Of a DNA stretch of 64,000 nt, positions 5,002-61,574 are shown piece by piece. The position numbers and the translations under genes were made by a program. Source of the stretch: Cyanophora paradoxa CCMP329 (Eukaryota; Plantae; Glaucophyta); NCBI GenBank assembly GCA_004431415.1, contig QPMI01000005.1, positions 620,001 to 684,000 of the forward strand. Reading direction: 5' to 3'. Positions within the stretch are counted from its first letter, which is position 1. Every line of letters starts with the position of its first letter. The notes beneath the pieces are model-generated. The model saw only the letters and a list, made by a program, of their open reading frames with translations, was not told where the DNA came from and searched no databases.

Positions 5002-6039
5002 GGTCCGACGGTCCTTCAAGGAGGCCTAGGGCTCGCCTACAATAGTTTCGTGAAATCGATATCGGTGGTGCAAATTCCGCAAAGAAATTCATTTATATCC
5101 CTTCTGCCCCTGAACTGGGGGGTACGGAAAATTTGCGGACAGCGCGACGATTACGGCAGCGCGGCGGGCCAGGCTTCCCACCCGTGGGTGCCTGATAACG
5201 CCGTGTGTCAAGCTGCTCGGAAAGTCGCGCGCCAGCTCCACCCGACCCCCGTAGACCGACAACGCTAGCCAGCCCAGCCGAGCGCGAGCCGACAGCCGAC
5301 GCGGGCACCTTACCATCCAGCATCACTGCCGAAGCCGACAGCCCGCCCCCGGAGCGACGTGGAGCCCCGCCGACCTCGCCATGACGCCGACGCTTTTTGA
5401 ATATCAAGGACCTTGCCCGCGCCCCGCGCGGGACATACGGATAGCGCGCTGCCACCCTAGATCTTCCGCATAACGTCGCAGTCCTAAAGCGTTGAGCGAC
5501 CACCTCGACTTCGCCCGAGCTCCCGCCATCGCCGCCCGGCCACCCACACGCCGCCCGCCGCATAGCCGATGCCCGATGACCGCCAGCTCTCTAAGATGAC
5601 GCACCCGCCGTCGACGTCGCGCGCCGCCGCCACTAGTACTGTCCCTCGAATGCCGCCGTCATGCTGCAGGCGCCGCGCGCGCCGCCCCATCCTTACAGAA
5701 CGTGCTCGCGCGCCTGCAGATCTCGACCTGCATCTTGACCTCTCTCCTCCGCCTCGAGCTCGCCGCGCGACGGGGCCGTCGGCGCCGTCCGATGTACAAC
5801 TACGGCGGGGTGCGCCCACGCCCAACTCCCTAGCGCCCCGCGCCGGTCCCCCCCCGCCCAGAGCCCAGGCCCCGCGGGCCCACGCCCCCGCCCCCTCTCC
5901 CCCGGCCTGGGCCCAAAGGGCGCCCACCCGGACTCCTCCTCCCCGAGGCCGGTACAGAGACGTGTACGCTCGGTCCCCCCCCCCCGGAGCCAGACGAGGC
6001 TCGCCCGACCCGGCCTCCAAGCCGGCCCCTGCCGCCGGT

Positions 6040-6560
6040 GCCAGCGCCCCGCCCCCGCCCCCGGCTCCAGCGCCCCCCCGCCCTCCGGCTCCAGCGCCCC
6101 GCCCCCGCCATCCGGCTCCAGCGCCCCGCCCCTGCCCTCCGGCTCCAGCGTCCCGCCCCGCCCTCCGGCTCCAGCGCTCCGCCCCCGCCCCCCGGCTCCA
6201 GCGCCCCGCCCCCGCCCTCCGGCTCCAGCGCCCCGCCCCTACCCTCCGGCTCCAGTGCCCGCCCCCGCCCCCCGGCTCCAGCGCCCGCCCCCGCCCTCCG
6301 GCTCCAGCGCTCCGCCCCGCCCCCCGGCTCCAGCGCCCCGCCCCCGCCCTCCGGCTCCAGCGCCCCGCCCCGCCCTCCGGCTCCAGTGCCCGCCCCGCCC
6401 TCCGGCTTCAGCGCCCCGCCCCCCCCCCCTCCGGCTCCAGCGCCCCGTCCCCACCCTCTCCAGCGCCCCGTCCCACCCTCTCCAGCGCCCCGTCCCCACC
6501 CTCTCCAGCGCCCCGCCCCGCCCTCCGCCCCCCCCAGCGCCCCGCTCCGCCGCCCCCAGC
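6040..6560 (+). repeat. C-rich minisatellite, ~22-27 bp unit (CCGGCTCCAGCGCCCCGCCCCCGCCCT-like), degenerating rightwards
   Basis: The core CCGGCTCCAG/CTCCAGCGCCCC recurs in tandem well over a dozen times; the Pro/Ala/Ser ORFs here are products of the repeat. Confidence 0.9.
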
Positions 6561-7466
6561 GCCCTGCCCCGCCGCCCTCCAGCGCCCTGCCCCGACCCTC
6601 AGCGCCCCGCCCGCTCCCGGCCCGTCACCCTCCCGCCCGCCCCGCCCCGCCCGCCCCCCAGCTCCCCGACCCCAGCGCCTCACCCCGCCATGTACCCCAC
6701 TCCCTGCCCAGCGCTCCGCGTACTCCGTGTCCCCCTCCCTACGCCTCGCCCCACGCCAACCCCCAGCACCCCGTGCGCCTCGCCTTCCCCCTCCCTCCTT
6801 TTCCACAGGACCAAGGACACCAACGCATCAGGCCCTCCTCAAGCCGCAGATCGATAGCTCACAGCTAGGATAAGATAGCAGGACGTCTTCCCTCTATGCC
6901 GCAGAGCCTCAGAGCTAGCCTAGGCGCCCCCCCAGTCGATGAAAGCGACGGGGCGGCTGTTGTTGTCCTTAATACGAACATTGCCCGGTTGGGCTTTTGC
7001 AAAAAATCCCTTCTGCCCCTTCGCTTTCCGTCCCGTCGGTCCGTAGGCCAGTTCCGAATTTGAAACAGTACCATTTCTGACCCAGCCGCGGGTGAGCGCG
7101 ACTCTACGACTGCTTTGTGTGCCATTGCGCTGCGCACGCGTCACGGCGTGGCGCCTTCCATCGATCGCGATATCCCACTGATCATGAGCTTTGAAGGCGG
7201 TTCGTTTGATTCTACTTGCGAAGCCAGCTGCAGTTGCAAGGATCGATATCTCGATCATAAGTACATGCATACGAGGGAGATGAATCGCTTAACCATTTAT
7301 ACGAAAAGATCGATATCAGAGCACGTGCACGTCGAAGCATATCGAATTCCGAATCACGGGTTGATGTGGCGAAGCACGCATTGTACACTTTACGGCGAAT
7401 TCGAGTACGATCAGAGTGTTGCTCGTTATCAATCGTAATATAAATTCAAAAAATAATTGGGGCCTT

Positions 7467-10400
7467 CTATGCTAGCGCTGCGCCGAAGCACGGGTTGCTC
7501 TCCTGCGCCCCTTCGGGCGCGTCATCGCCTGCGGCCGTGCACCCAGACGCCGATGCTGGCGACGATATCGATGGCGCTGGCGGGGCGCAGGTCGCGGGGG
7601 GATCCAGAAGCCACCCCACGCCGCCGCCCTGAGCGAACACGCGCCGCAGCGTTTCGTGCGCCCACGTTGCCGCGTCCGCCTGCATCGAGTCAAGGCCGGG
7701 GATGGGCATTGGAAGCAGCGTTAACGTTGAAGCAAGGTACAAAGTGGCGCGCACGATGGCCCCGTGAGGGTCGAAGGGCATCGCAGCCCCCAGGCGGCGG
7801 ATGCTGACAGGAGCCGCACCCGCCATGCTCCAGAGTCGAATGGACCTGTCGTCGCTTCCGGATGCAAGCGTCTTGCCATCCTGTTCAGATCGAGTTCAAA
7901 GCATGAGCGATTGTACGGTAAGATATGTAGGTATGACATTTGCACTGGGGTTCGCCAGCATCAGCCTGAACCCCTCTGCTGAGTTTATTCCGCTAGACAG
8001 CTCGCACCGGAGCGAAAGCCACAGCTGAGATACCAGCCATATGCATGTGCCCTCTGAGGACGTGGAGAAGCGCCCCGCTCGCCACGCTCCACAGCCGAAC
8101 GGAGCCGTCCGCGCCGCCCGACGCCAGCGTTTCGCCGTCCTGTCGTCTCGCTAGAATAAGCAATCACTACAGGCACAGATTTGCAAAGGAAACGCGGCCG
8201 CTCGCACCGGCGAGAATGCCACTGCCTGGCCGACTCCATTATCCTCGTAGAGGCCTAGGACGTGAAGCACGTTGTTCTTAGCAACACTCCACATACGCGC
8301 GGTTCCATCGTAACTGCCTGATGCCAGGGTCTTTCCATCCTGCATTGACCGCAGCCCGTATCACGATTTCGAGTTCGATATGCATATGCATGCGATTGCG
8401 CTTGAACGCTAACGCACAGGCGAGAAAGCCACCGAAATGATGCCGCCTGTGTGTCCCTTAAAAATGCCGAGCGTGGCCCCGTCGGCCACGCTCCACAGTC
8501 GCAACGTCTTGTCCGAGCTTCCTGACACAAGCGTCGTGCAGTCCTACCCGCGGCCGTCTCATGAGCATGCGTTCTAGATGTGAGATCGCGGAAAGCAAGC
8601 CGCTCACCGGCGAAAACGCCAAACAAGTGAATGCAAGCGCATGCCCCTCCAAGATGCAAAGCAATACTTGGTCGACTGTGTTCCAAAGCCGCGCGGTTCC
8701 GTCTTCGCTTCCCGAGGCCAACATTTTGCCATCCTGCACAGCCCAAAACCATACTAGTAAGCAACGCCGATACACAAGCTTAAGCTTTCGCATTTAAATT
8801 TTTGCTTTATGAGCAACTCGTCTTTGCATCTTTCAAAACATCTTCCAAGTTCGCGGGCCGCGGGCCGCACCGGTGAAAAAGCTACTGAATGGATCTTCGC
8901 CTTGTGCCCCTCAAAGACGCAGCGTAGCGCTCCGTCCACCGCGCAATACAGCCGCACGTTGCCTCGCCACGTCCCCAACGCCAGACTCTTGCAGTCCTGC
9001 CCACGCGCAATGCAGCAGGGTCAGCACAAACAAACGTACGACAGCTTAACTCTACGTGCACGATACTTAGAAGTGAATACAGATCAGCCTATTCGCGACT
9101 CAGATCGCTCGCACCGGGGAAAGTGACACAACCCAGCTGCGGATTCGATCTATGTGTCTCTCGAGCTCAATGATGTTGAGCGCGTGCGAAGCCCCGTCTG
9201 CCACACTCCAGAATCGTATGGTACTGTCTCCATGTGATACCAGCGTTTTGGCGTCCTGCGGAGATTGAGCACATCACAAAATTAAGCTCGACTAGCCAAT
9301 GTGTGCCCCTGGCCCCCGCTTTATTTTCGAATGCCTCCTCGTCTATATCAAGAGCTTGTCGAGCCCTCTGATTTATATTGCTTTCTGCATGGGTACATAT
9401 ATATACGCACAGATGTGAATACCAACGCCGTAACTGGACCCTTGTGTCCCCCAGATCTAGAGACGTGGAGCAGCGCCCCGTGGCCATCCGCCTGGTGCAT
9501 ACCCCAGAACCGTACGGTCTCGTCATAGCCGCCAGACATGAGCGATCTTCCATCCTGCAAGCATCGGCGGCATGAGCCTACTAGCGCAGCCATGGCCACC
9601 CGACCGCTTGCAGACGCTGCGCTTCACCGGCAAGAAAGCCACGGACGTAACCCTTGCTTCATGTCCGCCAAGAACACGCACAAGTGTTCCATCTGCAACT
9701 CTCCACAGCCGCACTGTTCTGTCGTCACTTCCCGATGCCAATGTTGCGCCATCCTGCACGTGCATGTGACATATGCATCATTTGCAATTGCGAAGGACCA
9801 GTCAGAGAAACGTCAATAGAGCGGCATATATGCATTGATTTCAGTTGTGCATGTCTCTACACACTTTAACATAGCTCTCGCTTGCAGACCTCAAAATATA
9901 GAGCTCTCAGTTTGCAATTGGCGCACCGGCGAGAATGACACAGAGGAGACGGAATTTGCGTGCCCCTTCAGGGAGAAGAGGAGTGCTCCATTTGCAGCGC
10001 TCCAGAGCTGGACACTGCCGTCCAAACAGCCGAACGCCAGCGTTTGTCCATCCTGCCCGGCTCCGAATCTTCAACATGAGCTCGAGTTTCCTCTCCAACA
10101 AAAGCAAAGTTATAAGCCGCCGCACCGACGAGAAAGCCGCCGTCTGAATGCCCAAAATGCGCTCCTCCGGCTTGAGGACGCGCAGTTCTGTCCCGTCCGT
10201 CGCGCTCCACAGCCGCGCAGCCATGTCACCGCCTCCTGACACCAGCACTGCGCCGTCCTGCATGACGAGCGAGTGTTAGACCCTTGCAAAACTTATCGAA
10301 GTTCCAAAAGCGTTTGAAGTACGCACTGGCGAAAAGGCGACGGAGTGGACCGCTTTCGCGTGCCCCTTGAGGGTACGGAGAGATGTCCCGTCCGCCGTGC

Positions 10401-13400
10401 TCCACAGCCGCACAGTCTTATCCCGGCTGCCTGATGCCAGAGTTGCGCCATCCTGCCGCATTGCAAGAATGAGCTTTGATTCGCCCATGAATATGGGTCA
10501 CGGGAGTTTTTGCACCGGCGAGAAGGCCACTGAGATCACCCAGTCCGTGTGCCCCTCTAACTTCAGGATGCGGGGCTGATCACGAGTCCCATCCTCGAAA
10601 TTCCACAGCTCGACGACGGCGTTCTCACCTCCCCATCCCAACATTGTGCAATCCTGAGCAACGCGTCAACAGCAGGATCCGGATGCATATGCATGCACAT
10701 GAAGATACATCAACAGCAGGATTCATGATTATGAAAGTATTGAATGTCGCTCTCACCGCAGATAAAGCGACAGACAATACGCGCCGGTACCGGTCGCTCG
10801 CCTGCATACGTCGAACCTCGCGATTCGTCTCGACATCGACAAAGCAGACCGCCCCGGCCGAGCATCCAGCGACTATATAGCGGCCATCCTGGAAGAAAAG
10901 CTCACATAAGGATCGATGAAACAAAAGAAACGCATAAAGATCGCACCCGTGCGACTGCAACGCTGAGCACAGCAGAGTCCATCTCACACGCCGGCCTCAC
11001 GCTGAGGCGGCAGCCGGTGAGGTCAGCGCCGCGCAGGTCGGCCCCCGCGAGGTTCGCATCGTCCAGCAGCGCGCCGCTGAGGTCCGCCCCGCGCAGGTCC
11101 GCCCCCGCGGCCTCCAGCCGGAACAGGTCCGCTCCAGGCACCCGAATGCCCCGCAGCTCCTTGCCCGCGAACGAGGTACCGGCTGCGCGATTGTAAGCCG
11201 GAAGTTAAAAGTATCAATTCAATTCATGATCAGAAGCAGAAATATTGCGGACCATGATTCAAGATCGTCATCGCATTTGCGGCTGCGAATAGCGCGATTT
11301 GTGAATCATCTTGCACCGACTTCCGCACGCATTCCCACAGCGCCTGCACACGAAACCCGATTGAATGAGGGCAAATACGTGCACACAATCGCATAGTACT
11401 AGTTCGCACCTCGACAAAGGGCGGGTCGGAGCGGGCGCGGTCGGCGAGGAACCGCATCACAGCCGAGTCGTCCACCAGCAGCCGGCGGCCGAGCCCGCCC
11501 ACGACACCCGCCCCGCTCCCCATCCACCTGCGCAATCGAAGGCGATTCTAAACACCTTTTCAAAGGCAACAATATTTCAGAAGCGGACGTTGCGGATGGG
11601 CGACGCAGGGAGCCGGCCGCGGCGGACGTGTTGGCCGCGAGGCGGGCGTCGAGGTACGGTAGGATGCTGTCGGCGAGGAAGTACTCCTTGAGCGACGCGT
11701 GCACAAAGCTGTACGAGGCTTTGCCGTCGCCCTCCGACACCGTCTTCAGCGGAGAGGCCTTGATGAACTCCTGGTTCTTCTCGCTGGTGAGCAGCATGGC
11801 GGCCTTCGCCGTCGGATCCGGCTCTGTCTCGTCGGCATCTGTGTGCCTTTTCTTCAGATTCAGCACGCCGAACGAAAGCTGCAGATCCACAGTCAAGACG
11901 GTCGTGGCCTGCAAGGGTTTCAATATTAGATAGAGGTACGAAAACCAATATTTATGCCCTAGCGCGTGCGCGCTACAGGTTGCTATAGCGCACCAGCTGG
12001 TCCATCAAAATGGCGAGAGCCCGGCAGAAGTTCCGGCAGTTGACGGCGAAGCGCTTGAAGCGCCCCTGCCCCACCCGCTTCTCCTCCTCCCGCTTGAACA
12101 ACCCGGCAACGAACGCGTCGTACACGTCGCGCAGCAGTACGCGCACAGAACCTTCCTTCTGCTTCTCCTGCCTGCACCCGCATGACCAGAATCAGCCGTC
12201 GTGTGCCTGCAACGCCGCTTTTCAAAAAGCAGTACGAGCGCACATCTTCTTGTCGATGGACGGGAGCTCCTTGCAGGCGATGGAGAGCACGAAGGGCGTG
12301 CGGATGATGTCGAGCAGGCCGAGGATCGTGTTGATCTGCTTCATGTACCAGTCGAAGCCGCGCTCGGGGTCCGGATTCGCGGCGAGCCACTGCCCCACGT
12401 ACGCTCCAATCTGGTCCCGGTTGAATGGGCACGTCCACGCCTCGCAGACTTGCTTGGGTGCCCCGATCGAATCCAGCAGGAAAAAGCTCTGCAGCGACGA
12501 AAACAGGCTCAAACGTTTCGAATCATCACGAAAAGAGGGGCGACGCAGATATTTCGATTTGAATCTGTGCACCTTTGGATCGGCGCCGAGGCTCGGGAGG
12601 TACTGGGCGCGGCAGGCGACGACGACGCGGGCGGCCCACGACTTGAGCTTCGGGAACAGGATGTGCAGAGCGTCGCTCTTCCCTGTCTGCGAGGCGCGAG
12701 GTCAGAGGGGCCGGTCAAGAGCGAAACGCGACGTGCGTGCAGCGTGCACGCGCCTCGTCGAAGCCGTCCAGCAGCGCGAGGAGCTTGACCCTAGCGGCGT
12801 TACCGGTAACGAGTCTGCAGTCAGGAACGAAGATAGGTTTGGGGCCCTCAGGGCCAGCGGCCCCCGCACCTCTGCTGCAGCGCCTCCCTCAGCTCGCGGT
12901 CGCCGTCGTGCAGGCCCGCCTTGGCGACGAGCTCCTCGACGAGGTCCAACTCCGAGACGGTGACGGCGGGCAGGGAGACGAGGACAGGAAAAGGCGAGCC
13001 CGCGGCCGGGCGCCACTGCTCGAGCAGGCGCCTGTGCAGCCGCCGCAGGCTCGTCGTCTTGCTGCAGCCGGAGTCACCTGCGCGGCCGTGGGTGCAACGT
13101 CAGTTCGAGAAATGGATGAAGATTCTAGTGAAGAACGTAAGCCAACCGCGCGAGGCCTGACCTGTGAGAAGGAGCACGCGGTGGCCGGCTGTGCTCCCGC
13201 CGGGCGCGGCGCCGGAGGCCGCGAAGGCGTCGAGGGCGGCGTCGAGATCGAAGCGCCGCCCCTCGTCCGCCGCGAGTCGACCATCGATGTCCGCCGCAGC
13301 ACGCGCCGGCACGTACAGATCGCTCTCCATCTCCTCTCTGTACCGGTCGAGCAGCTCCTCCCGCGCCTGCTTTGCTGTGAGCCCGTGCACGGCGAACGGG

Positions 13401-16400
13401 GCGCCAGCGCCACGGCAAGACGCACCCCAGAGAGCACATCGCTCAGCCGCTGCTCGGGATTGCGCTCCTCCTCCGCCTTGAGAGCCGCAAGGACGAGCGC
13501 GCTCCGCCCCGCGGTCCCCGAAGATGGATGCGCCGTCCCCCGCACGCGCGCGGCCGGCTTGAGGCGTCTCGCTGGACCGGCACCGGCCTCGAGGCCGATG
13601 CTGAAGTGCGCCGCGGCCTCCTCCACCGCCGCCCGCGCAGCCTCCAGAGCCGCCAGCCGGCGGAGTGCCTGCAGGGCTGCAGCTGGCGCAGAGCCGACAC
13701 TGTCCAGAGCCGCGACGTGCGCCAGCGCCGCCGCCGCCGCCCGCAGCGACGCGGCGCCGTCCTTGAGCCCCGCCGCCGCCTCCGCGCACGCCTCGAGAAG
13801 CTTCACTGCGGAATCCGCGGCGGCCGCGGCGCGTCCGCCGTCATCCGCGCGCTCCACGGCCTGCGACGGCGTCGGCGTGGGGTCCTTGCGCCGCTGCGAG
13901 GCGGGACGCACGGCGACGAGGGCGGCGCAGAGGGCGAGGGCGAGCTTCCGGCTGCGAGCGACCTCCGCCATCGCTGGCGCGTCCAGCAGCGCCCGCAGCT
14001 CCTCCAGCCGGCCCCGCTCAGCCAGCGTCCCCACCAGCCGCGCCCGCACAAACCTGCAAGGCGGCGTCGGTGCGAAATGCGAACGCTTGAATCGAAATCG
14101 GACAAGGGGGGGCGGACCAGGCCTCGGCTTTCTTGGGGTGGTCGGCCCCAGCGATGGTCCGCACGTCGCTCCACATCTCCCGGAGCGCCTCCCGCGCATC
14201 GCCGCGATTCTCCTGCGGGCAATCAGCGCGGGCGATCTCGGGCTCGGCGGGCGGGGCGGGCCTTGATCCAAAAGATGGCGTCGATGACGGTCGTGACGCC
14301 GAAGCTCGCCACCCCCTCCGCCACCAGCTTGCCCGCCCTGTACAGCTTCTCCAGCACCCGCACTGCGCGATATCGATGGACTTTCAGAGAGGAAGGAGCA
14401 CACATGCGCCGCCGGAAGGGCGCACTGGCGGCCTTCGCGCGGCGGACGGCGTCGCCAAAGCGGTCGTAGTCGGAGCTCGCGCGCACCAAGGCCTGCGCGA
14501 GATGGTCAAGCGGGCCGCGCTGCGCTCGGGCGGGGCGCGGGGGCCGGGCGGACCTCGCGCGCAAGGTAGGCCGCCGCCTCCGCCCGCCACGATCCCGCCG
14601 CCTCCGCCTGCTTCGCGATCTCCTTCAGCCGCGCGCTCAGCGGCTTTACGACCGCCTCGTGGCTCAACCGCCGCGCCTCAGCTGCGCTCCCATCAGTGGC
14701 GGCGGAGCGGAGCGGAGGCCCAGGCAAGGGGGCCGGGGCGGGCCTTGGGCGGGGGAGGCGGCGGCGGCGGCGGCCTCGAGGGCGGCGAGGGCGGCGGCGA
14801 CGAGCTCGAGCCGCGCGAGGTCGTCGTGGTCCGCCAGCCCCGCCCCCTTCACCCCCGCCAGCTGCGCCCCCGTCGGAGAGGGTGGCGCTTGCGGAAGAGG
14901 GGGGCAGGGAGTGGGGGTGGGGGGGTGGGGAGGGGGTGCAGGGTGTGTGAAAGGTGGGTGGGAAAGGGAAGAGGAAGCGGAGGGTCGGGGGTAGGGGCGG
15001 AAGCGGGGGGGGGGGAGCCGAACGGGGAGGGCGAGGGGGGGGGGGGGGCGGGGGGGCCGGAGGTAGGAGCGGAAACGGGGGGGGAGGGGGGAGGGATGGC
15101 AACCGGGGTTAGGGCAGAAGGCGGCGGGAGGAGCGGGAGGCCGGGGGTAGGAGTGGAAACGGGGGAGGGGGGGGGGGGGGGGGGCGAGGAGGGGATGGCG
15201 ATGGCGACCGAAACGAGGTGGGAGAGGGAGCCGGGGGCGGGCGGGGACGGGCGGGAAAGGAGGGCGGAGGGAGAGTAGAGACAAGCTTAATAGGCGGAAG
15301 AAGCGAGGGCGGGGGAGGGGCGAGGAAACGGGGGGAGAAGGAGGAGAAGCAGAGAGGGGAGAGCGTAGTCAGATCGGGCGGGGTATCGCACCTGCTCGGA
15401 GCAGAAGTCGATGAGGACGCGCCAGTCCGCCGAAGTGAAGGCGCCGGCGCCCTGCGGGAGGCAGCCGAGCGCCGCCACGAGCGCTGCCAGCACACCGCTG
15501 TTCGCCAGCGCCGCCACCTTCGCCCGTCCGATCAGCTCGTTCACCAGCTGCGCCGGTTCAAAGTCAGGCGCGGCGCGGCGCGGACGGGGGCCGGTCCGTG
15601 TCTAAGAGCGGGCCGGGGGCTCGGGGCGGCGCGCCTCGCGACAGAGCCCCGGGTCGGCGGACGCCAGGAGGCCGCACACGTCCGCCAGGTCCTCCGCGCC
15701 CGGCGCGCCCGTCTCTGCGAAGGCCGAGAGCGCTGCGGCGAGGCTCGGGGCGCGCGGGCGCGCGGGATGGGCGCGATCGAGGACGCCGCACCGCGCTCGC
15801 AGAGCCGCCGCAGCCGCTGCCGCGCGGCGGCGAGCTTCTGCAGCTCGCTGGCGCCGGCGGCTGCCTGCACAACCGGCAGCTGCAGCGCGCGCCCGGCCGG
15901 CCCGTCCGCCGCGCAGTCCATCCGACGGGCGGCGGCCTCGCCGGCGGCGACGAGGCGGAGGAGCGCGGCGAGCTGCGCGACGCTGCGCGCCTCCCGCAGC
16001 TGCAGCGCCCGCAGCTCCTCCAGCGGCGGCCCCGCGCCCAGCGGCGCCGGCGGCTCCTCGGGCTCGCCAGGCGAGTCCGGAATGTCGAGTGACACCTCCT
16101 CCGGATCCAGCGATATGACGTGGACGGGCTGCGGCTTCGCGTCGCATTCTGCAGCGGCCGCGGCTGCTGCGCTCGCGTCTGCAGCTTTCAAGCCGCCGCA
16201 GCTATCGGCCGCGGGTGCTGCGGGGCTCGATGCGGCTGCGGCCGCGGCTTTTAGGTCGGCGGGGGCATGGGAGGCTGGTGCGGCTTCGGCGTCGCGGTCC
16301 GACTCGCAGGCTGCAGTTGCAGGTACCGGTTTCGGGTCGCCGGCGCTATAGCTAGCGCCGGCGGCCGCGAGGGCGGCTGCAGTTGGCGCGGCCGCGGCGT

Positions 16401-16554
16401 TCGAGTCGCAGACCGACTCGCAGGCTACAGCTTTCGGATCGATGGATCGTGCCGCAGCAAGCTCTTTCGGATCGCAAGCTACAGCGGGTGCAGCTGCGGC
16501 TGGGGCTGGAGCTGCAGCTGGGCGCGGTTTGGGCTTGCTGCACCCGCAGCCCAT
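7467..16554 (-). CDS. NLR-like STAND protein copy A: N-acylation motif, ARM-like domain, NACHT, pentapeptide repeat, 14x WD40 (~34 exons)
   Basis: Start MGCGCSKP at 16554. Spliced Walker A-like [14 protein letters not shown], Walker [33 protein letters not shown], winged-helix [23 protein letters not shown] followed by [26 protein letters not shown]40 exons DG..LASGS.D.TVRLW..GH..V.SVAFSP lie between 10887 and 7467. Confidence 0.92.
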
Positions 16555-16989
16555 CGCAGGGGAAGCGGCCGGATGTTGAAGGCACGAAAATCCTCGATGG
16601 AAGAACTCTGCGCACGATCGAGCGCTTCAGCAGCTGTACGCGCGCGGGCCCGGCGATGGAGGGAGCGATCAAATGGCCGGCGCACACGCTCCCGACTCCC
16701 GCAGGCACGGGACCGAGCCTGACAACTGCTGGATCGCTGCCCGCTTCTCGCGCGCTGCTCGCTCTGCTCGCGCTCGCTCGCTCGCTCGCTGAAGCTGATC
16801 AGTGAGTGCTGCAAGCCTTCAACGCGTCGGACGTGCGCCGCCGCCGCTGGCCGCACCAGCGTAGCCCCTACAACGCTTCGCTTCGGCGCCGTCATCACCG
16901 CAAAACCGGACCGGCGCGCCTTTGCCTGTACCCCGCGAGTCTTTTTTTCGGCCGAGCGAGCTTGAGACGCGCGACGACGCTCGATTCCA

Positions 16990-18415: not shown

Positions 18416-18447
<32 letters not shown>

Positions 18448-19754: not shown

Positions 19755-19795
<41 letters not shown>

Positions 19796-39200: not shown

Positions 39201-42200
39201 GGCGCCGCCTCGCTGCGGGCGGCGGCGGCGGCGCTGGCGCACGTCGCGGCTCTGGACAGTGTCGGCTCTGCGCCAGCTGCAGCCCTGCAGGCACTCTGCC
39301 GGCTGGCGGCTCTCATGTCTGCGCGGGCGTCGGTGGAGGAGGCTGCGGCGCGCTTCAGCATCGGCCTCGAGACCGGTGGCGGTCCAACGAGACGCCTCAA
39401 GCCGGCCGCACGCGTGCGGGGGACGGCACAGCCATCTTCGGGGACCGCGGGGCGGAGCGCGCTCGTCCTTGCGGCTCTCAAGGCGGAGGAGGAGCGCAAC
39501 CCCGAGCAGCGGCTGAGCGATGTGCTCTCTGGGGTGCGTCTTGCCGCGGCGCCGACGCCCCGGCCCGTTTGCCGTGCGCAGACTCACAGCGAAGCAGGCG
39601 CGGGAGGAGTTGCTCGACCGGTACAAAGAGGAGATGGAGAGCGACCTGTACGTGCCGGCGCGCGCTGCAGCGGACATCGATGGCAGACTCGCGGCGGACG
39701 AGGGGCGGCGCTTCGATCTCGACGCCGCCCTCGACGCCTTCGCGGCCTCCGGCGCCGCGCCCGGCGGGAGCACAGCCGGCCACCGCGTGCTCCTTCTCAC
39801 AGGTCAGGCATCGCGCAGTCAGCTTGCGTTCTTCACTGGAAGCTGTGCCTATTTCTCGCATTAACATGTATATCGCACCCGGCCGTGCAGGTGACTCCGG
39901 CTGCAGCAAGACGACGAGCCTGCGGCGGCTGCACAGGCGCCTGCTCGAGCAGTGGCGCCCGGCCGCGGGCTCTCCTTTTCCCGTCCTCATCTCCCTGCCC
40001 GCCGTCACTGTCTCGGAGTTGGACCTCGTCGAGGAGCTCGTCGCCAAGGCGGGCCTGCACGACGGCGACCGCGAGCTGAGGGAGGCGCTGCAGCAGAGGT
40101 GCGTCGGGCCCTGAGGGTTCCGAACATCTCTTCGTTCCTGACTTCAGACTCGTTGCCGGCACGGTCGCTAGGGTCAAGCTCCTCGCGCTGCTGGACGGCT
40201 TCGACGAGGCGCGTGCACGCTGCGCGCACGTCGCGCTTCGCTCTTGACCGGCCCCTCTGACCTCGCGCCTCGCAGACGGGGAAGAGCGACGCTCTCCACA
40301 TCCTGTTCCCGAAGCTCAAGTCGTGGGCCGCCCGCGTCGTCGTCGCCTGCCGCGCCCAGTACCTCCCGAGCCTCGGCGCCGATCCAAAGGTGCACAGATT
40401 AAAATCGAAAAATCTGCATCACCGCTCGATAAGTGAAGATTCGAAACGCTTAGCCTTTTTTCGTTGCTGCAGAGCTTTTTCCTGCTCGATTCGATCGGGG
40501 CACCCAAGCAAGTCTGCGAGGCGTGGACGTGCCCCTTCAACCGGGACCAGATTGGAGCGTACGTGGGGCAGTGGCTCGCTGCGAATCCGGACCCCGAGCG
40601 CGACTTCGACTGGTACATGAAGCAGATCAACACGATCCTCGGCCTGCTCGACATCATCCGCACGCCCTTCGTCCTCTCCATCGCCTGCAAGGAGCTCCCG
40701 TACATCGACAAGAAGATGTGCGCTTGTGCTACGTACTGAGAAGCGGCGTTGCAAGCTAGTGACTGCTGATTCCGGTCATGCGGGTGCAGGCAGGAGAAGC
40801 AGAAGGAAGGATCTGTGCGCGTGCTGCTGCGCGATGTGTACGACGCGTTCGTCGCCGGGTTGTTCAAGCGGGAGGAGGAGAAGCGGGCGGGGCAGGGGCG
40901 CTTCAAGCGCTTCGCCGTCAACTGCCGCAATTTCTGCCGGGCTCTCGCCATTTTGATGGACCAGCTGGTGCGCAATAGCTACCTGTAGCGCGCACGCGCT
41001 AGGGCATAAATACGGGTTTTCGTACCTCTAGCTAATCTCGTAACCTCGCAGGCCACGACCGTCTTGACAGTGGATCTGCAGCTTTCGTTCGGCGTGCTGA
41101 ATCTGAAGAAACGGCACACAGATGCCGACGAGACAGAGCCGGATCCGACGGCGAAGGCCGCCGCGCTGCTCACCAGCGAGAAGAACCAGGAGTTCATCAA
41201 GGCTTCTCCGCTGAAGACGGTGTCGGAAGGCGACGGCAAAACGTCGTACAGCTTCGCGCACGCGTCGCTGAAGGAGTACTTCGTCGCCGACAGCATCCTG
41301 CCGTACCTCGACGCCCGCCTCGCGGCCGACCCGTCCGCCGCGGTCGGCTCCCTGCGTCGCACATCCGCAACGTTCGCTTCTGAGACATTGTCCGCTTTGA
41401 AAAGTTCTTAGAATCGCCTTCGATTACGCAGGTGGATGGGGAGCGGGGCGGACGTTGTGGGCGGGCTCGGCCGCCGGCTGCTGGTGGACGACTCGGCTGT
41501 GATGCGGTTCCTCGCTGACCGCGCCCGCTCCGACCCGCCCTTCGTCGAGGTGCGAACTGTGCGATTGTGTTCAGGTGTCAATGTACTCCCTCGTTAAATC
41601 GGGTTCCGTGCACAGGCACTGTGGGAATGTGTGCGGAAGTCGGCACAAGACGGTTCACAGAGCGTGCTGTTTGCAGCCGCCAATGCGATGACGATCTTGA
41701 ATCACGGTCCGCGATATTTCTGCTTTTGAATTGAAATTGATATCTGGCTTACTTTTGGCTTAACAAACGCGCAGCCGGCACCTCGTTCGCGGGCAAGGAG
41801 CTGCGGGGCGTTCGGGTGCCTGGAGCGGACCTGTTCCGGCTGGAGGCCGCGGGGGCGGACCTGCGCGGGGCGGACCTCAGCGGAGCGCTGCTGGACGAGG
41901 CGAACCTCGCGGGGGCCGACCTGCGCGGCGCCGACCTCACCGGCTGCCGCCTCAGCGTCAGGCCAACGTGTGAGATGAAATCTGAAGTGCGCAGCGTCGC
42001 AGTCGTGCGGGTGCGCGCGCTGTTATGCGATTATTCAGTTGCATCCATCTTTCTGTGAGCTTTGCTTCCAGGATGGTCGCTCTGTAGTCGCTGGATGCGG
42101 GGACGGGGCGGTCTGCTTTATCGATGTCGAGACGAATTGCGAGGTTCGACGTATACAGGCGAGCGACCGGCCCGTAAAGTCCTTCGCTTTATCTGCGGTG

Positions 42201-45200
42201 AGAGTGACATTCGAAACTTTATGATCATGAATCCTGCCGTTAATGTATCTATACAATCATGTGTGTGCATCCAGATCCTGCTGTTGACGCGCGCGTTGCT
42301 CAGGATGGCACAATGCTGGGATGGGGAGGTATGAACACCATCGTCGAGCTGTGGAATCACGAAGATGGGACTCAGCCCCGCATCCTGAAGTTAGAGGGGC
42401 ACACGGACTGGGTGACCTCAGTGGCTTTCTCGCCGGTGCAAAAACTGCCGTGACCCGTGCGCGAATCAAAACTCATTCTTGCGATGCGACAGGATGGTGC
42501 AACTCTGGCGTCAGGGAGCTACGACACGACTGTGCGGCTCTGGAGCGTGGCGGACGGGGCGCTTCTCTGCACCCTCAAGGGGCATGAGGACACGGTCTCC
42601 TCCATAGCCTTTTCGCCAGTGCATACTGCATACATTTTTGGAACTTCGATAAGTTTTGCAAGTTTCTCATAATTGCTCGTCATTTTTTTAGGACGGCGCA
42701 GTGCTGGTGTCTGGAAGCATTGGCGCGACTGCGCGGCTGTGGAGCGTGGCGGAGGGGACAGAACTGCGGGTCCTCACGCTGCAGGTGTCTATAACGACGG
42801 CGGCTTTCTCGTCGGTGCGGCAGCTTAGAACTTCGCCTCTGCCAGAGAGCACCGGATGCTCGATCACGAGCTCATGGTTAAGTTGGGGGCCGAGCAGGAT
42901 GGACGAACGTTGGCGTTCGGCTGTGACGACGGCACTGTCCAGCTCTGGAGCGCTGCAAATGGAGCACTCCTCTTCTCGCTTGAGGGGCACACAGCCTCTA
43001 TCTCTTCTGTGGCATTCTCGCCGGTGCGCCCAGTTCGTAGTCTACATGCACAACTGAGAGCTATATCGCTCTCGATCTCTTGACGCCGCTCCTGCACAAT
43101 TGCAAATGTTAACATATCCACATGCAGGATAGCGCGACCCTGGCATCCGGGAGTTCCGACAAAACCTTGCGGCTGTGGAGAGTTGCAGATGGGACACTTC
43201 TGCGCGCCCTCAGCGGACATAAAGAAAGCGTGAAGTCCGTGGCATTCTCGCCGGTGAGACGCGCACAGTGTCAGCGAATTGTCGGGTGGCCGTGCATTCT
43301 GTTAACGTGGCTCTTTGCTCATGTCACCAATGCTTGCAGGATGGAAGATCGCTCACGTCTGGCGGCGATGACAAGACCGTACGGTTCTGGAGTATGCACG
43401 CGGCGGATGGCCACGCGGCGCTGCTCCGCGTCTCTGAGGGGCACAGAAGTCTAGTGAAGTCGTTGGCATTCACATCGGTGCGTAAACATGTACATACCCA
43501 TGCAGATCTAGAAGGCAATTTAATGGGCTTGACAAGATCTAGATCTAGACGAGGACACACACGCATCTCTTGCATTAGCAAACAACACAACTTCAATGAG
43601 TTTCACATCGCCCAAGACATATATATCCGACTAGAGCATTCACGTCAGTGCCTATGACTAGAGCTAGTGGAAGCGAATTTACCAATATGCACAGATTATT
43701 TGGCAATTGAAGGCCTAGGACTTGATCATGACAAGCTTTTGCCGAAGAGGCATTAGAAAGCGGGGGCACATGTCGCGCGTCCAGCTCAATCTCGTGCTGT
43801 GCTAAATCTCAGCAGGACGCCAAAGAGCTGGTGTCGTATGGAAGATCTATTAGAGGGTCAGACGAGACCGTACGGATCTGGAGTGTCCCAGATGGGACTT
43901 CGCTCAACGTGGTTGAGCCCATGTCCGGGAGACACACGGATGAGAAGATCTGTGCTGCTTCACTTTTCCCAGTGCGAGCCATCCGAGTTCAAAATAGGTC
44001 ATCCAGTATAATCATATATATACAGATATAAATCATCATCTATAATCATAAGTACAGTCTATATAGCTAGCTGTCTTTCGTTTGCATCTATAATATTAAT
44101 CATAAGTACGTGTACAGTCTAGCTGTCTTTCGTTTGTGCTTACGCGGCCGAGTTGCACGTGGGCAGGACGGCAAGAGTCTGGCGTTGGGGACGTCACGAG
44201 GCAACGTGCGGCTGTGTAGCGCAGTGGACGGAGCACTACAATGTATCTTTTCGGGACACAATAAAATGATTGTGTCGGTAGCTTTTTCACCGGTGCGGCC
44301 CGCGGAGAACGAGATGCAAAAACGAGTTGCTCAAGATGCAAAGATACGAAAGTTTGTGTACCAGCGACGCTAATGATTTTGGGCTGTGCGTGCGCAGAAT
44401 GGCAAAATTTTGGCCTCGGGAAGCAGAGACAAAACCGTGCGGCTTTGGAATACAGTCGACCAGGTATTGCTTCGAGTCTTGGAGGGACACGTGCTTGAAG
44501 TCACTTCTTTGGCGTTCTCGTCGGTGAGCGGCTTGCTTTTCGCGATCTGACATCTAGAACACATGCTCACGAGAAGGCCACGGGTAGGACTGCACGATGC
44601 TTGTGTCAGGAAGCTCGGACAAGACGTTGCGACTGTGGAGCGTGGCTGACGGGGCAGCGCTCGGCATTTTCAAGGGACACACGAGCTACATTTATTCAGT
44701 GGCTTTCTCGCCTGTGCGCAAGCGTTTAGTGCTTGTGCGCAAGCCTTTAGACTCGAAATGTGATACGGGCTGCGGTGGATGCAGGATGGTAAAATCCTGG
44801 CATCGGGCAGTCACGACCGAACCGTGCGTATGTGGAGCGTTGCTAAGAAAGAAGTGCTTCACGTCCTCGAAGACGATACTGGAATCGTCATGGCAGTGGC
44901 ATTCTCGCAGGTGCAAGCGGCTGCGTTTCTAACTATATGCCCTAGCTATAGCTAGAGCTCGAGGCTCACAAATCCTCTGGATCGGAGCCCTGTACCTGGT
45001 GCAAGCAGACGCGCTTCTAGCTATAGATTTATATTTTTTTTGGACCTTCGGATTCTATATTGATCGCTTATTCGAGCGAGACGGCAGGATAGCGAAACGC
45101 TGGCGTCGGGCGGCGCGGACGGCGCCGTGCGGCTGTGGGGCGTGGCGAGCGGGGCACACCTCCGCGTCCTCAGGGGGCACGCGGATATAGTTTCTGCTGT

Positions 45201-45812
45201 GGCTTTCGCTCCGGTGAGAGCTGTCTGGGGTAAAACTATAATTTAGCTGTAGGGGTCAGGCTGAGTAATATTATATATGAGGCTAGCGAACCCCAGCTCA
45301 CATTTTACATTTACATAGCTAAGCGCACCCCAGTTCATCATTTTATACTTGCAATGCTAATTATAAGCGTACAATTACGTTTACTCATGCTTTGAATCCG
45401 ATCCTAACAGGATGGCAAGACGCTGGCATCCGGCAGCCACGACGAGTCCATCCGACTCTGGAGCGTGGCGGGTGGGGCCCCTGTCAGCATCCGCCGCCTT
45501 GGGGCTGCGATGCCCTTCGACCCTCACGGGGCCATCGTGCGCGCCACTTTGTACCTTGCTTCGATGCTGCTTCCAATATTTTTCCCCGGCCCTGAACCTC
45601 TGCAGGCGGACGCGGCGACGCAGGCGCACGAATTGCTGCGGCGCGTGTTCGCTCAGGGTGGCGGTGTGGGGTGGCTTCTGGATCCCACCGTGACATCCAC
45701 GCCGCCAACGTCGTCGATATCGATGCCTGCATCGGCGCCCGGATGCACGGGCGACGACACACCAGAAGGCGCGCAGGAGAGCAACCCGTGCTTCGCCGCA
45801 GCGCTTACATAG
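36232..45812 (+). CDS. NLR-like STAND protein copy B: N-acylation motif, ARM-like, NACHT, pentapeptide, 14x WD40 (~34 exons)
   Basis: Same motifs as A. WD40 exons start at about 42072, 42304, 42493, 42692, 42898, 43128, 43340, 43816, 44167, 44398, 44588, 44785, 45088 and 45410, each beginning D/N after AG and (except the last) ending before GT. Confidence 0.92.
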
Positions 45813-45984
45813 TAGACTCCAGTCTATCATGAGCGATAAGAAAGCAACACGTCTCTCCGACGTTGCAAAAGACTCTGACTGAGAGGACGTCGACGTTGCG
45901 TTGAATGTTCCGAAGATGCTAGCTAGTTCTCGAACGCATATGCACGACAATCCGTGCTTCGCCGCACAGCGCTAACATAGCTTT

Positions 45985-56600: not shown

Positions 56601-59600
56601 CAGCGTCAGGCCAACGTGTGAGATGAAATCTGAAGTGCGCAGCGTCGCAGTCGTGCGGGTGCGCGCGCTGTTATGCGATTATTCAGTTGCATCCATCTTT
56701 CTGTGAGCTTTGCTTCCAGGATGGTCGCTCTGTAGTCGCTGGATGCGGGGACGGGGCGGTCTGCTTTATCGATGTCGAGACGAATTGCGAGGTTCGACGT
56801 ATACAGGCGAGCGACCGGCCCGTAAAGTCCTTCGCTTTATCTGCGGTGAGATTGACATTCGAAACTTTATGATCATGAATCCTGCCGTTAATGTATCTAT
56901 ACAATCATGTGTGTGCATCCAGATCCTGCTGCTGACGCGTTGCTCAGGATGGCAAAACACTGGGATGGGGAGGTATGAACACCGTCGTCGAGCTGTGGAA
57001 TCACGAAGATGGGACTCAGCCCCGCATCCTGAAGTTAGAGGGGCACACGGACTGGGTGACCTCAGTGGCTTTCTCGCCGGTGCAAAAACTGCCGTGACCC
57101 GTGCGCGAATCAAAACTCATTCTTGCGATGCGACAGGATGGTGCAACTTTGGCGTCAGGGAGCTACGACACGACTGTGCGGCTCTGGAGCGTGGCGGACG
57201 GGGCGCTTCTCTGCACCCTCAAGGGGCATGAAGACACGGTCTCCTCCGTAGCCTTTTCGCCAGTGCATACTGCATACATTTTTGGAACTTCGATAAGTTT
57301 TGCAAGTTTCTCATAATTGCTCGTCATTTTTTTAGGCCGGCGCAGTGCTGGTGTCTGGAAGCATTGGCGCGACTGCGCGGCTGTGGAGCGTGGCGGAGGG
57401 GACAGAACTGCGGGTCCTCACGCTGCAGGTGTCTATAACGGCGGCGGCTTTCTCGTCGGTGCGGCAGCTTAGAACTTCGCCTCTGCCAGAGAGCACCGGA
57501 TGCTCGATCACGAGCTCATGGTTAAGTTGGGGGCCGAGCAGGATGGACGAACGTTGGCGTTTGGCTGTAGAAACGGCAGTGTCCAGCTCTGGAGCGCTGC
57601 AAATGGAGCACTCCTCTTCTCGCTCGAGGGGCACACAGCCTCTATCTCTTCTGTGGCATTCTCGCCGGTGCGCCCAGTTCGTAGTCTACATGTACATGCA
57701 CAACTGAGAGCTATATCGCTCTCTTGACGCCGCTCCTGCACAATTGCAAATGTTAACATATCCACATGCAGGATAGCGCGACCCTGGCATCCGGGAGTTC
57801 CGACAAAACCTTGCGGCTGTGGAGAGTTGCAGATGGGACACTTCTGCGCGCCCTCAGCGGACATAAAGAAAGCGTGAAGTCCGTGGCATTCTCGCCGGTG
57901 AGACGCGCACAGTGTCAGCGAATTGTCGGGTGGCCGTGCATACTGTTAACGTGGCTCTTTGCTCATGTCACCAATGCTTGCAGGATGGAAGATCGCTCAC
58001 GTCTGGCGGCGATGACAAGACCGTACGGTTCTGGAGTATGCACGCGGCGGATGGCCACGCGGCGCTGCTCCGCGTCTCTGAGGGGCACAGAAGTCTAGTG
58101 AAGTCGTTGGCATTCACATCGGTGCGTAAACATGTACATACCCATGCAGATCTAGAAGGCAATTTAATGGGCTTATCTCGTGCTGTGCTAAATCTCAGCA
58201 GGACGCCAAAGAGCTGGTGTCGTATGGAAGATCTATTAGAGGTTCAGACGAGACCGTACGGATCTGGAGTGTCCCAGATGGGACTTCGCTCAACGTGGTT
58301 GAGCCCATGTCCGGGAGACACACGGATGAGAAGATCTGTGCTGCTTCACTTTTCCCAGTGCGAGCCATCCGAGTTCAAAATATGTCATCCAGTATAGTCA
58401 TATATATACATATTTAAATCATCATCTATAATCATAAGTACAGTCTATATAGCTAGCTGTCTTTCGTTTGCATCTATAATATTAATCATAAGTACGTGTA
58501 CAGTCTAGCTGTCTTTCGTTTGTGCTTACGCGGCCGAGTTGCACGTGGGCAGGACGGCAAGAGTCTGGCGTTGGGGACGTCACGAGGCAACGTGCGGCTG
58601 TGTAGCGCAGTGGACGGAGCACTACAATGTATCTTTTCGGGACACAATAAAATGATTGTGTCAGTAGCTTTTTCCCCGGTGCGGCCCGCAGAGAATCTTT
58701 GGAAGATGTGAACAAGACTTCAGCTTTCTCCTGATGCAGATGCAAAACTTGTGTACCGGTGATGCTTATGATTTCATGCTGCGCAGGATGGCAACATGTT
58801 GGCCTCTGGAAGCAGAGACAAAACCGTGCGGCTTTGGAATGCAGTCGACCAGGTATTGCTTCGAGTCTTGGAGGGACATGTGCTTGAAGTCACTTCTTTG
58901 GCGTTCTCGTCGGTGAGCGGGTTGCTTTTCGCGATCTGACATCTAGAACACATGCTCACGAGAAGGCCACGGGTAGGACTGCACGATGCTTGTGTCAGGA
59001 AGCTCGGACAAGACGTTGCGACTGTGGAGCGTGGCTGACGGGGCAGCGCTCGGCATTTTCAAGGGACACACGAGCTACATTTATTCGGTGGCTTTCTCGC
59101 CTGTGCGCAAGCGTTTAGTGCTTGTGCACAAGCCTTTAGACTCGAAATGTGATACGGGCTGCGGTGGATGCAGGATGGTAAAATCCTGGCATCGGGCAGT
59201 CACGACCGAACCGTGCGAATGTGGAGCGTTGCTAAGAAAGAAGTGCTTCACGTCCTTGAAGACGATACTGGAATCGTCATGGCAGTGGCATTCTCGCAGG
59301 TGCGAGCGGCTGCGTTTCTAACTATATGCCCTAGCTATAGCTAGAGCTCGAGGCTCACAAATCCTCTGGATCGGAGCCCTGTACCTGGTGCAAGCAGACG
59401 CGCTTCTAGCTATATAGATTTATATTTTTTTGGACCTTCGGATTCTATATTCATCGCTTATTCGAGCGAGACGGCAGGATAGCGAAACGCTGGCGTCGGG
59501 CGGCGCGGACGGCGCCGTGCGGCTGTGGGGCGTGGCGAGCGGGGCACACCTCCGCGTCCTCAGGGGGCACACGGATATAGTTTCTGCTGTGGCTTTCGCT

Positions 59601-60182
59601 CCGGTGAGAGCTGTCTGGGGGAAAACTTTTAATTTAGCTGTAGGGGTCAGGCTGAGTAATATTATATATGAGGCTAGCGAACCCCAGCTCACATTTTACA
59701 TTTACATAGCTAAGCGCACCCCAGTTCATCATTTTATACTTGCAATGCTAATTATAAGCGTTTGAATCCGATCCGAACAGGATGGCAAGACGCTGGCATC
59801 CGGCAGCCACGACGAGTCCATCCGACTCTGGAGCGTGGCGGGTGGGGCCCCTGTCAGCATCCGCCGCCTTGGGGCTGCGATGCCCTTCGACCCTCACGGG
59901 GCTATCGTGCGCGCCACTTTGTACCTTGCTTCGATGCTGCTTCCAATATTTTTCCCCTGCCCTGAACCTCTGCAGGCGGACACGGCGACGCAGGCGCACG
60001 AATTGCTGCGGCGCGTGTTCGCTCAGGGTGGCGGTGTGGGGTGGCTTCTGGATCCCACCGCGACATCCACGCCGCCAACGTCGTCGATATCGATGCCTGC
60101 ATCGGCGCCCGGATGCACGGGCGACGACACGCCAGAAGGCGCGCAGGAGAGCAACCCGTGCTTCGCCGCAGCGCTTACATAG
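50689..60182 (+). CDS. NLR-like STAND protein copy C: N-acylation motif, ARM-like, NACHT, pentapeptide, 14x WD40
   Basis: Same motif series and exon structure. Walker A exon junction at 54447/54535, [12 protein letters not shown] at ~55903, WD40 exons 56720-60182. Confidence 0.92.
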
Positions 60183-61574
60183 TAGACTCCAGCCCCAATT
60201 TGCAATCTCTTATATATATAATTATGATCGATATGAAATCAACACATGTACATATCTCGAGGGTTCCGAGCTCTGGCCCATATGCAGGATCCTGCGCCGC
60301 AGGATCCTGCAGCCCTGCAGGCGCCCCTCTAGATCTGGACCGCCGGGGCCGTGCGGCCACGGGCGGCGAGCCAGCGCAGGTACACCATCTCGCTCGCTGT
60401 CAGAACGCAGCGCTAGCGTTTGGTATGATCACGACACCTCGGACTGCAAAGCTCAACAGAGTGGGGATGGGGGAAGGGGGAAAGGAGGGGGGGGGGGGGG
60501 GGGGGGGGGGGGGAAGGCTGGGGTGACCTTGTGTATGCATAGGGGCAGGGGGGCGCCGGGGCAGGGGGCGGGGGGGCAGGGGGCAGGGGGGCATATATAG
60601 GGAGAGAGGAGCAGGGGGCAGGGGGCGCTGCCCCTGCCGCCCCGTCACGAGTCAGGCCCTTCACTTAACGAGCCGGGAAGGGATTACTAAAGCCGGCGGG
60701 CGCCGGGGCGGGCAGTCGAACTGCAAACGACGGCGAACGACAGGTCGAGCACGAGGACCAGTCATAAAACTGACGCTAGTATCAACACTACGATCAGAAT
60801 TCGAACCAGACTGAACTAAACTAGAAGACGGAGAACGCTGGCGCCGGAGGGATACAACCGGCTTTGGGCCATGCATATGGCCAGCGGCGATATTTTTATT
60901 TATAGCATACGTATCTTTAATTTGATCATGAGTTCTAGATTTGCAGAATGTCAAGGGGGTGGATTAGCTCTAGTTCACCCCATCTTCTGGCGTTTGGGAC
61001 CTCAGGAAGGAAGCGGGACCTCAGGGAATGCATATGGGGGGAAATCAAGAAGCGTCGAGTCGAGAGGGGCGGCGTCAATTTTTATACAGTATCTTTGAGT
61101 TCTGCACTGCAGCAGAGTGGCCCAGTGGCCCAGTGACATGTTGGCAGCTCGGGCTCCACGGAAGTCACTGAGTCCCTGTCACTACATGTTCGTGTTTGTT
61201 CATGATCATCGGTTGCTGTTGCAATTGCTTGTTCAAGCAGCCGCAACAGCCGCGGCCAATTAAATTTCACAGCTGCAGCTCTGTTCAAGGTTGCTTGTTC
61301 AAGCACTGCCAGGCTGATCATGATCAGGTCTACGTAATTCTCAATATCGACCGACTCGGATTTGATCAATATCTCATTTCACAATTCGATCAATTTTTAC
61401 AGCTGCAGCTCTGTTGCTTGTTCAAGCACTAGCACTGCCAGGCTGATCAGGTCTAGGTAATTATACTCAATATCGATCGACTCGGATTTGATTGATATCT
61501 CATTTCACAATTCGAACACAAGGAGCCATGGCCATGGCCATGACCAGCGACACCCTCAGATCTCCTAGGCTAGG

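Follow-up and report, generated by a model that had tools for sequence, protein, structure and literature searches.

Amino acid replacements between NACHT-like WD40 paralogues of the glaucophyte Cyanophora paradoxa are concentrated on the predicted top face of the WD40 sensor

In a 64,000-nucleotide stretch of the Cyanophora paradoxa CCMP329 genome (assembly GCA_004431415.1, contig QPMI01000005.1, positions 620,001 to 684,000 of the forward strand; hereafter the window, with positions counted from its first letter), three related genes, which we call A, B and C, each encode an array of 14 WD40 repeats. A previous inspection of the letters alone, referred to here as the sequence-only reading, had proposed that the differences between these paralogues are concentrated on the top face of WD40 propellers, as in the fungal HET-E proteins, and that they reflect diversifying selection on ligand recognition. 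The locus raises the question of whether the differences are indeed located on one face of the sensor and, if so, what has placed them there. We find that the top-face codons have changed 2-4 times faster than synonymous and intron sites since the sensor of A split from that of B and C, and that the scaffold, the bottom-face loops, the C-terminal tail and the nucleoside triphosphatase (NTPase) part are under purifying selection. In our view, A, B and C are probably clustered NLR-like STAND paralogues in which positive selection has favoured a changed top-face surface by point substitutions, with gene conversion acting on top.

Comparison of the window with itself revealed a unit of ~13 kb in three copies, with A inverted at ~7458-20231, B at ~35024-47651, and C from ~47644 to the window end. 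The spliced genes, of which A is encoded by the minus strand and B and C by the plus strand, contain in this order an ARM-like part, a NACHT-like part, a pentapeptide part and the 14 WD40 repeats. In all three copies each repeat is a single phase-0 exon bounded by AG and GT, and the reading frames of all three genes are intact. The span 7467-10887, on which the sequence-only reading had focused, extends from the stop codon of gene A to its first WD40 exon. The exons of the sensor are as follows.

7755..10888, minus strand: the fourteen WD40 exons of gene A, one repeat each, between AG and GT and in phase 0 (exon model and spliced contigs)
7755-7880, 8008-8139, 8208-8339, 8418-8543 and 8608-8733, minus strand: WD14, WD13, WD12, WD11 and WD10 of A
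8871-8996, 9115-9255, 9411-9554, 9628-9753 and 9927-10052, minus strand: WD9, WD8, WD7, WD6 and WD5 of A
10126-10257, 10327-10452, 10516-10653 and 10757-10888, minus strand: WD4, WD3, WD2 and WD1 of A
42072..45815, plus strand: WD40 exons, tail and stop of paralogue B (WD1 at 42072-42197, WD14 starting at 45411, gene start at 36232)
56720..60185, plus strand: WD40 exons, tail and stop of paralogue C, which is EukProt tig00000042_g15549.t1 (P0004; gene start at 50689)

Single exons served as queries in our searches, while full-length Pfam scans, alignments and folds were based on the database proteins P0004 and P0029, the latter being the EukProt entry for gene A; exons were joined for the codon counts and for an identity check, in which the exon model of the WD40 part and tail of A gave a translation identical to residues 1268-1948 of P0029. 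A single exon matched the Pfam WD40 family (PF00400) with 41.6 bits at a cut-off of 27, and P0004 and P0029 showed many WD40 and propeller family matches. The AlphaFold models of repeats 1-7 of C and repeats 8-14 of A each contained 28 strands, with pLDDT values of 88 and 85.5 and pTM values of 0.86 and 0.85, respectively. Foldseek related the model of C to solved seven-bladed WD40 structures (5yzv, 5mzh and G-beta) with TM values of up to 0.91. Judged by these models, the 14 WD40 repeats would fold as two seven-bladed propellers. A four-stranded meander of this kind presents the b-c turn and the d-a loop on one side of the propeller, opposite to the a-b and c-d loops.

Because three sequences, two of which are nearly identical in the sensor, hold no per-site phylogenetic information, we pooled the repeats by register instead of applying PAML-type site models. 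All 14 repeats were placed in one register of 42 residues, with the landmarks D1 G2 .. S9 x10 D11 x12 T13 .. W17 .. G30 H31 x32 x33 x34 V35 x36 S37 .. P42. Differences between A and B accumulated at position 10 (11 of 13 repeats), position 12 (9 of 14), position 32 (9 of 11), position 33 (7 of 11), position 34 (10 of 12) and position 36 (10 of 13), while every remaining register position differed in at most 5 of 14 repeats, and positions 23-29 in at most 3 of the 6 gap-free repeats. In the AlphaFold models, positions 10 and 12 lie in the b-c turn, positions 32-34 in the d-a loop and position 36 at the start of strand a, which assigns the variable positions to the predicted b-c turn and d-a loop.

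The contrasting motifs quoted in the sequence-only reading are all present in the exons concerned. These are SGSRDK/GHAKAVHS in A against [14 protein letters not shown] in B for WD3, SGSDDR/GHEARVTS against [14 protein letters not shown] for WD6, GGYDE/GHKGPVTA against [13 protein letters not shown] for WD7, GHKAKIHS against GHNKMIVS for WD9, GHTGGIIS against GHTSYIYS for WD11, SGSDDR against SGSHDE for WD14, and GCLDGS, GCDDGT and GCRNGS in A, B and C for WD5. The concentration of divergence that was claimed from them far exceeds what chance would give: A and B have different residues in 60 of 88 cases at the HET-E-type positions, as compared to 71 of 422 at the other registered positions (Fisher p = 7e-21). 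Nor are the variable sites scattered over the predicted structure, as the top-face loops carry differences at 62 of 111 residues and the bottom-face loops at 21 of 130 (p = 8e-11). The bottom-face loops show non-synonymous to synonymous rate ratios (omega) of 0.39-0.45, and the signal is found in both propellers.

Strong positive selection has been reported for codons 7, 9, 25 and 27 of the Podospora NWD repeats, which form pairs that flank a consensus residue and belong to the top interaction surface (Paoletti 2007, PMC1805685; Chevanne 2010, PMC2873952). These codons correspond to register positions 34, 36, 10 and 12, and the set of positions to be tested was thus fixed in advance by the literature. 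Likewise, the top-face hotspots R1-2, R1 and D-1, defined by a (V/L/I)-R1-R2-(V/L/I) pattern and a conserved Asp (Wu 2012, PMC3419727), are register positions 34, 36 and 10. None of 5000 random four-position register sets reached the observed non-synonymous difference, and among the 2380 sets of four that can be drawn from the 17 non-consensus positions only one did so, namely the a-priori set itself. Replacements at these four positions affect 40 of 52 codons, across nearly all 14 blades and both propellers, and 26 of the 74 codons at the six variable sites carry two or three base changes.

The rates at these codons exceed those of the silent sites. For the four a-priori codons, pooled over the 14 repeats of A and B, the Nei-Gojobori method gave a non-synonymous proportion (pN) of 0.52, a non-synonymous rate (dN) of 0.89, a synonymous rate (dS) of 0.23 and an omega of 3.9. 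Omega was 2.8 for the six loop codons, 0.5 for the other non-consensus positions and 0.31 for the conserved core. The introns of the sensor differ by 0.259 (Jukes-Cantor 0.32), and the non-synonymous proportion at the top sites was higher than both the synonymous proportion of the WD40 part (p = 2e-10) and the intron difference (p = 3e-7). When only the six gap-free repeats were considered, omega was 2.2-2.7, and bootstrapping over repeats gave a ratio of 2.29 (1.88-2.97). Sites with an omega above 1, as anticipated in the sequence-only reading, were therefore found, with values of 2.2-3.9 at the a-priori top-face codons by Nei-Gojobori, and of 2.5-8.6 at the variable codons by LWL85, YN00 and maximum likelihood, which yielded less than 0.7 elsewhere. 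For the whole WD40 part of A and B, omega was 0.65, and for the C-terminal tail it was 0.38.

The history of the copies is not the same along the genes. In the upstream region, from 17650 to 16500 in A, the identity of A and C is 98-100% and that of B is ~90%. The NTPase part shows 91-95% identity in each of the three pairs, and from the border between the pentapeptide part and WD1 onward B and C are 97-100% alike, with A at 72-88%. This mosaic identity suggests that gene conversion has occurred repeatedly, with a breakpoint close to the pentapeptide exon. The NTPase exons of all three pairs show a dS of 0.09-0.10, an intron distance of ~0.16 and an omega of 0.22-0.34. In the sensor, the corresponding values are 0.235, 0.259 and 0.65 overall for A-B, and 0.028, 0.032 and 0.45 overall for B-C. 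As stated in the sequence-only reading, residue differences in the NACHT exons are few, with ~17 replacements between A and B among 376 codons. The contrast between NACHT part and sensor is nevertheless confounded by the mosaic history, since the NACHT dS is ~0.09 in all three pairs and the WD40 part has 2-2.5 times the silent divergence of the NACHT part. Constraint alone does not account for the quietness of the NACHT part, which partly reflects a younger coalescence brought about by gene conversion. From the NTPase part to the sensor, non-synonymous divergence rises sevenfold and silent divergence about twofold.

Positive selection on the binding face is the best reading of these data, because dN at the top sites exceeds the silent rate, synonymous change is not raised and no repeat swapping was found. 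Several observations weigh against it. The comparison involves just two independent sensor lineages, B and C having almost the same sensor, and the family members P0006-P0009 do not qualify as outgroups, being too divergent and having a sensor that is not positionally orthologous. The young pair B-C shows no top-face excess, with 2 of 14 replacements at these sites. The introns are rich in insertions and deletions and the most divergent single introns reach 0.39-0.41, so that the aligned intron distance may understate neutral divergence. The search for donors of micro-conversion covered the repeats of the window, as distinct from paralogues outside it. Lastly, Pfam detected no recognised death or effector domain and no HET domain in the N-terminal part of the protein, and only a borderline ARM_5 match.

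These points bear most directly on the possibility that a single adaptive shift followed the duplication. One copy would then have been retuned once by neofunctionalisation, possibly to a protein of the host cell, and both would have been conserved since, with neither ongoing diversification nor an immune role. Such a history would agree with the fact that there is one deep comparison only, with the low overall omega and missing top-face excess in the recent pair B-C, and with the good conservation of the non-variable sites in both lineages. However, the spread of replacements over most a-priori codons and nearly all blades, together with the many codons at the six sites that carry two or three changes, looks like the result of repeated hits. 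In addition, the family is large and clustered in the C. paradoxa genome, with the member g15554 (P0007) on the same contig, and even B and C have one top-face codon in which none of the three bases is the same. This D-1 codon of WD5 (B: GAC, C: AGA, A: TTG) belongs to a short patch:

42925..42935 in B and 57569-57579 in C, plus strand: WD5 b-c turn patch, with 5 of 11 bases different between B and C

By a scan statistic, only ~0.003 such patches would be expected by chance. We therefore regard a single shift as unlikely, though deserving of serious consideration. The proposal of diversifying selection on ligand recognition is supported as far as positive selection on the top face is concerned; recurrent selection and a single shift are not separable from one pairwise comparison.

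A second possibility is that a mutational process has written the loop codons, either through short gene-conversion tracts from unseen family members or through targeted hypermutation. Gene conversion has clearly been active among the copies, as judged from the mosaic identity, and the DNA run shows that the genome contains multiple copies of the NACHT and pentapeptide parts. The WD5 patch, with five changes in 11 bases, could have arisen in this way, as could a second divergent B-C patch at 44304-44452 in B and 58690-58841 in C, which spans intron 9 and the first 19 codons of WD10 and differs by ~26% amid 97-100% identity. The variants in this second patch match A in a mixed pattern, as if it had escaped homogenisation or come from an unseen donor. 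On the other hand, at 95% identity the DNA run contains the sensor of A in a single copy, and no donor for the WD5 patch was found elsewhere in the window. Synonymous differences are not raised, at 0.23 in the variable codons, 0.26 in the flanking codons and 0.20 in the background, and the differences in the variable codons favour codon positions 1 and 2 (37, 38 and 20 at positions 1, 2 and 3, as compared to 49, 32 and 72 elsewhere). For each repeat of A, the best match is the repeat at the equivalent position in B, with an identity of 0.78-0.94 outside the variable codons and of at most 0.80 to any other repeat, and no other repeat in the window matches the variable codons of A or B above chance. 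Altogether, neither repeat shuffling nor donor repeats were found within the window, and we consider a mutational cause improbable. Diversification by the fungal route, in which near-identical repeats are shuffled and evolve in concert, does not apply here, because the repeats are dissimilar (mean nucleotide identity within A of 0.54, maximum 0.71) and have positional orthologues.

Finally, a mere relaxation of selection on exposed loops, by which the unconstrained x positions of any WD40 repeat would have drifted neutrally, is very hard to credit: although WD40 proteins generally show their lowest conservation between repeats at these positions and the overall WD40 omega is 0.65, dN at these sites is 2-4 times dS and intron divergence, which neutral drift cannot achieve as it cannot exceed the silent rate, and other unconstrained positions and the bottom-face loops have an omega of 0.4-0.5.

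Having weighed these alternatives, we return to positive selection on a STAND-type receptor and to the remainder of the protein that carries the sensor. The other parts of gene A are located as follows.

7467..16554, minus strand: gene A, EukProt tig00000042_g15539.t1 (P0029), with the probable start MGCGCSK at 16554 and the stop at 7467-7469
7470..7679, minus strand: last exon, encoding the non-repeat C-terminal tail (RNA contig over 7460-7679)
10947..11182, minus strand: pentapeptide-repeat exon, the linker between the NTPase and the WD40 sensor (Pfam Pentapeptide PF00805, 47.4 bits, E = 1.4e-12; boundaries also from P0029)
11994..13077, minus strand: NACHT-like NTPase exons (RNA splice joints and translation)
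12870-13077, minus strand: NTPase exon with the Walker A motif G-D-S-G-C-S-K-T
12754-12790 and 12573-12686, minus strand: NTPase exons with the Walker B motif [11 protein letters not shown]
12244-12488 and 11994-12171, minus strand: NTPase exons; the winged-helix-like exon extends to 11410

The label NACHT rests on full-length EukProt proteins of C. paradoxa, retrieved by a representative search with one NTPase exon, and not on matches of single exons. Pfam NACHT (PF05729) matched the protein of paralogue C with 25.8 bits, just below the cut-off of 26.7, and the family member P0006 with 27.9 bits, above it. Pfam and PDB sequence searches with the NTPase exons one by one gave no family above threshold, the only matches of single exons being weak ones to AAA_22. 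The Walker B motif is of the NACHT type. In the Walker A motif of A, B, C and P0006-P0009, a Ser replaces the usual last Gly of the P-loop. This motif is split by an intron, its parts lying at 13060-13077 and 13162-13180 on the minus strand. A word search with the last exon returned no Cyanophora entries and no extra paralogues, but only WD40 fragments of cyanobacterial type.

Gene A is transcribed and spliced as modelled, since RNA-like contigs carry mismatch-free joints that are missing from the DNA run. The introns 8140-8207, 8340-8417, 8544-8607, 8734-8870 and 8997-9114 are spliced in contigs of three RNA-like runs with zero mismatch, and likewise six introns of the NTPase part, one of them of the GC-AG type. 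This GC-AG intron (12687-12753, minus strand), which is spliced in contigs of two runs, is with 0-3% difference the most conserved intron among the three copies. No differing letters that would represent alleles were found in the sensor in one DNA run, and the DNA runs that contain this stretch appear to come from the same strain.

Some further features of the three genes were recorded. All share the start MGCGCSK (16554, minus strand; 36232 and 50689, plus strand), with Gly2 and Ser6 and with Cys3 and Cys5, which fits N-myristoylation and palmitoylation and hence a possible membrane anchor; the public model of gene A has a different start. The public model of C (P0004, window ~58202-59102) jumps from the interior of WD8 to the interior of WD11 and thereby skips about three repeats; the genomic exons are intact and have good splice sites, and the jump probably reflects faulty annotation, as opposed to an alternative isoform. 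Intron 7 of B (43531-43788, plus strand) contains an insertion of ~258 bases without counterpart in C (338 versus 80 bases), which may be a small mobile element. In the pentapeptide block at 10946-11142, the depth of the DNA run is about five times that of the single-copy sensor, and several contigs match 11026-11120 only, with unlike sequence on either side. This suggests that many family members have a block of ~95 bases in common, with hardly any change. A long proline-rich open frame with degenerate tandem PAPRLQRP-like units and a self-similarity of 72-78% lies immediately downstream of gene A, at 5569-6873 on the plus strand.

The picture that we propose is that of a protein with a probable N-terminal acylation motif, followed by an ARM-like helical region, a divergent NACHT NTPase, a pentapeptide linker and the 14 WD40 repeats. 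Since the sensor of A separated from that of B and C, replacements have gathered at the b-c turn and the d-a loop (D-1, R1-2 and R1). Change has proceeded by point substitution in positionally orthologous repeats, with gene conversion reshuffling whole segments between copies. By analogy to other NLR/STAND receptors, the top faces would bind a ligand, probably of non-self origin, and its binding would release the NTPase switch, leading to oligomerisation and signalling. A ligand, a signalling output and an immune role are suggested by this analogy.

Among known systems, the HET-E, HET-D and HET-R proteins (NWD) of Podospora anserina are similar to A-C in several respects. In both cases an NTPase of NACHT or, in A-C, NACHT-like type is followed by WD40 repeats of 42 residues of the type GH...SVAFSPDG..LASGS.D.T..LW, the families are clustered or multi-copy with exchange between members, and selection acts on the same four codons of the top face, which flank the V after GH and the conserved D (PMC1805685, PMC2873952). 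However, the fungal repeats are near-identical and diversify by gain, loss and shuffling of repeats and by repeat-induced point mutation (RIP), whereas the repeats of A-C are ~54% identical, encoded by one exon each, positionally orthologous and changed by point substitutions. In addition, A-C have a pentapeptide linker and an ARM-like N-terminus, and no HET domain. The comparison with HET-E thus applies to the selected positions and fails for the mechanism.

The NB-ARC-TPR and LRR-ROCO candidate receptors of Ectocarpus are likewise algal STAND/GTPase families with one sensor repeat per exon; their genes arise and disappear rapidly, and their repeat domain is under diversifying selection (Zambounis et al. 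2012, PMC3341825). Unlike A-C, these brown-algal proteins have TPR or LRR repeats and another class of NTPase, and exon shuffling is dominant in them, while none was seen in A-C. The order NACHT-pentapeptide-WD40 is also found in proteins of the myxobacteria Sorangium spp. annotated as 'pentapeptide repeat-containing protein' (P0032, P0125, P0126 and P0140). A bacterial NACHT protein is collinear with A from the Walker A motif through a DGFDE Walker B motif and an F-H-x-S-x-x-E winged-helix motif into the pentapeptide repeats, with 26% identity over 545 residues, and the bacterial WD40 parts are 44-47% identical to the algal ones. In contrast to A-C, the Sorangium-type genes are intron-less, and at least some have other N-terminal modules (PF01048 in precomputed lists). 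Such sequence resemblance hints at a bacterial origin of the NACHT-pentapeptide-WD40 chassis. A survey of the glaucophyte proteome had found no APAF1_C-type protein (PMC8891106), and our literature search retrieved no study tying Cyanophora to NACHT receptors.

The evolutionary hallmark of immune and allorecognition receptors is that the binding face of their repeat sensor is under positive selection. To our knowledge, such selection has been documented for the top face of WD40 sensors only in fungi, and the comparable algal pattern has so far been that of the brown-algal TPR and LRR genes. In the present comparison, paralogues have been tested quantitatively with silent-site and intron controls. 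The results show that near-identical repeat arrays, on which the fungal system depends, are not a prerequisite for the top-face signature, which simple point substitutions can also produce in repeats that are old and dissimilar. The same four-codon signature, now seen in a glaucophyte, speaks for functional recognition, either of non-self or of specific partners, by receptors that have been without experimental attention, and the exact residues are now named for swapping in binding or genetic tests. It is conceivable, though we put it forward tentatively, that glaucophytes run a diversified repertoire of intracellular NACHT-pentapeptide-WD40 receptors on a bacterial-type chassis, the clustered paralogues of which would be kept different at the propeller top face by recurrent positive selection and remixed by gene conversion. 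NLR-like non-self recognition in Archaeplastida might then also occur with WD40 instead of LRR sensors, independently of plant NLRs.

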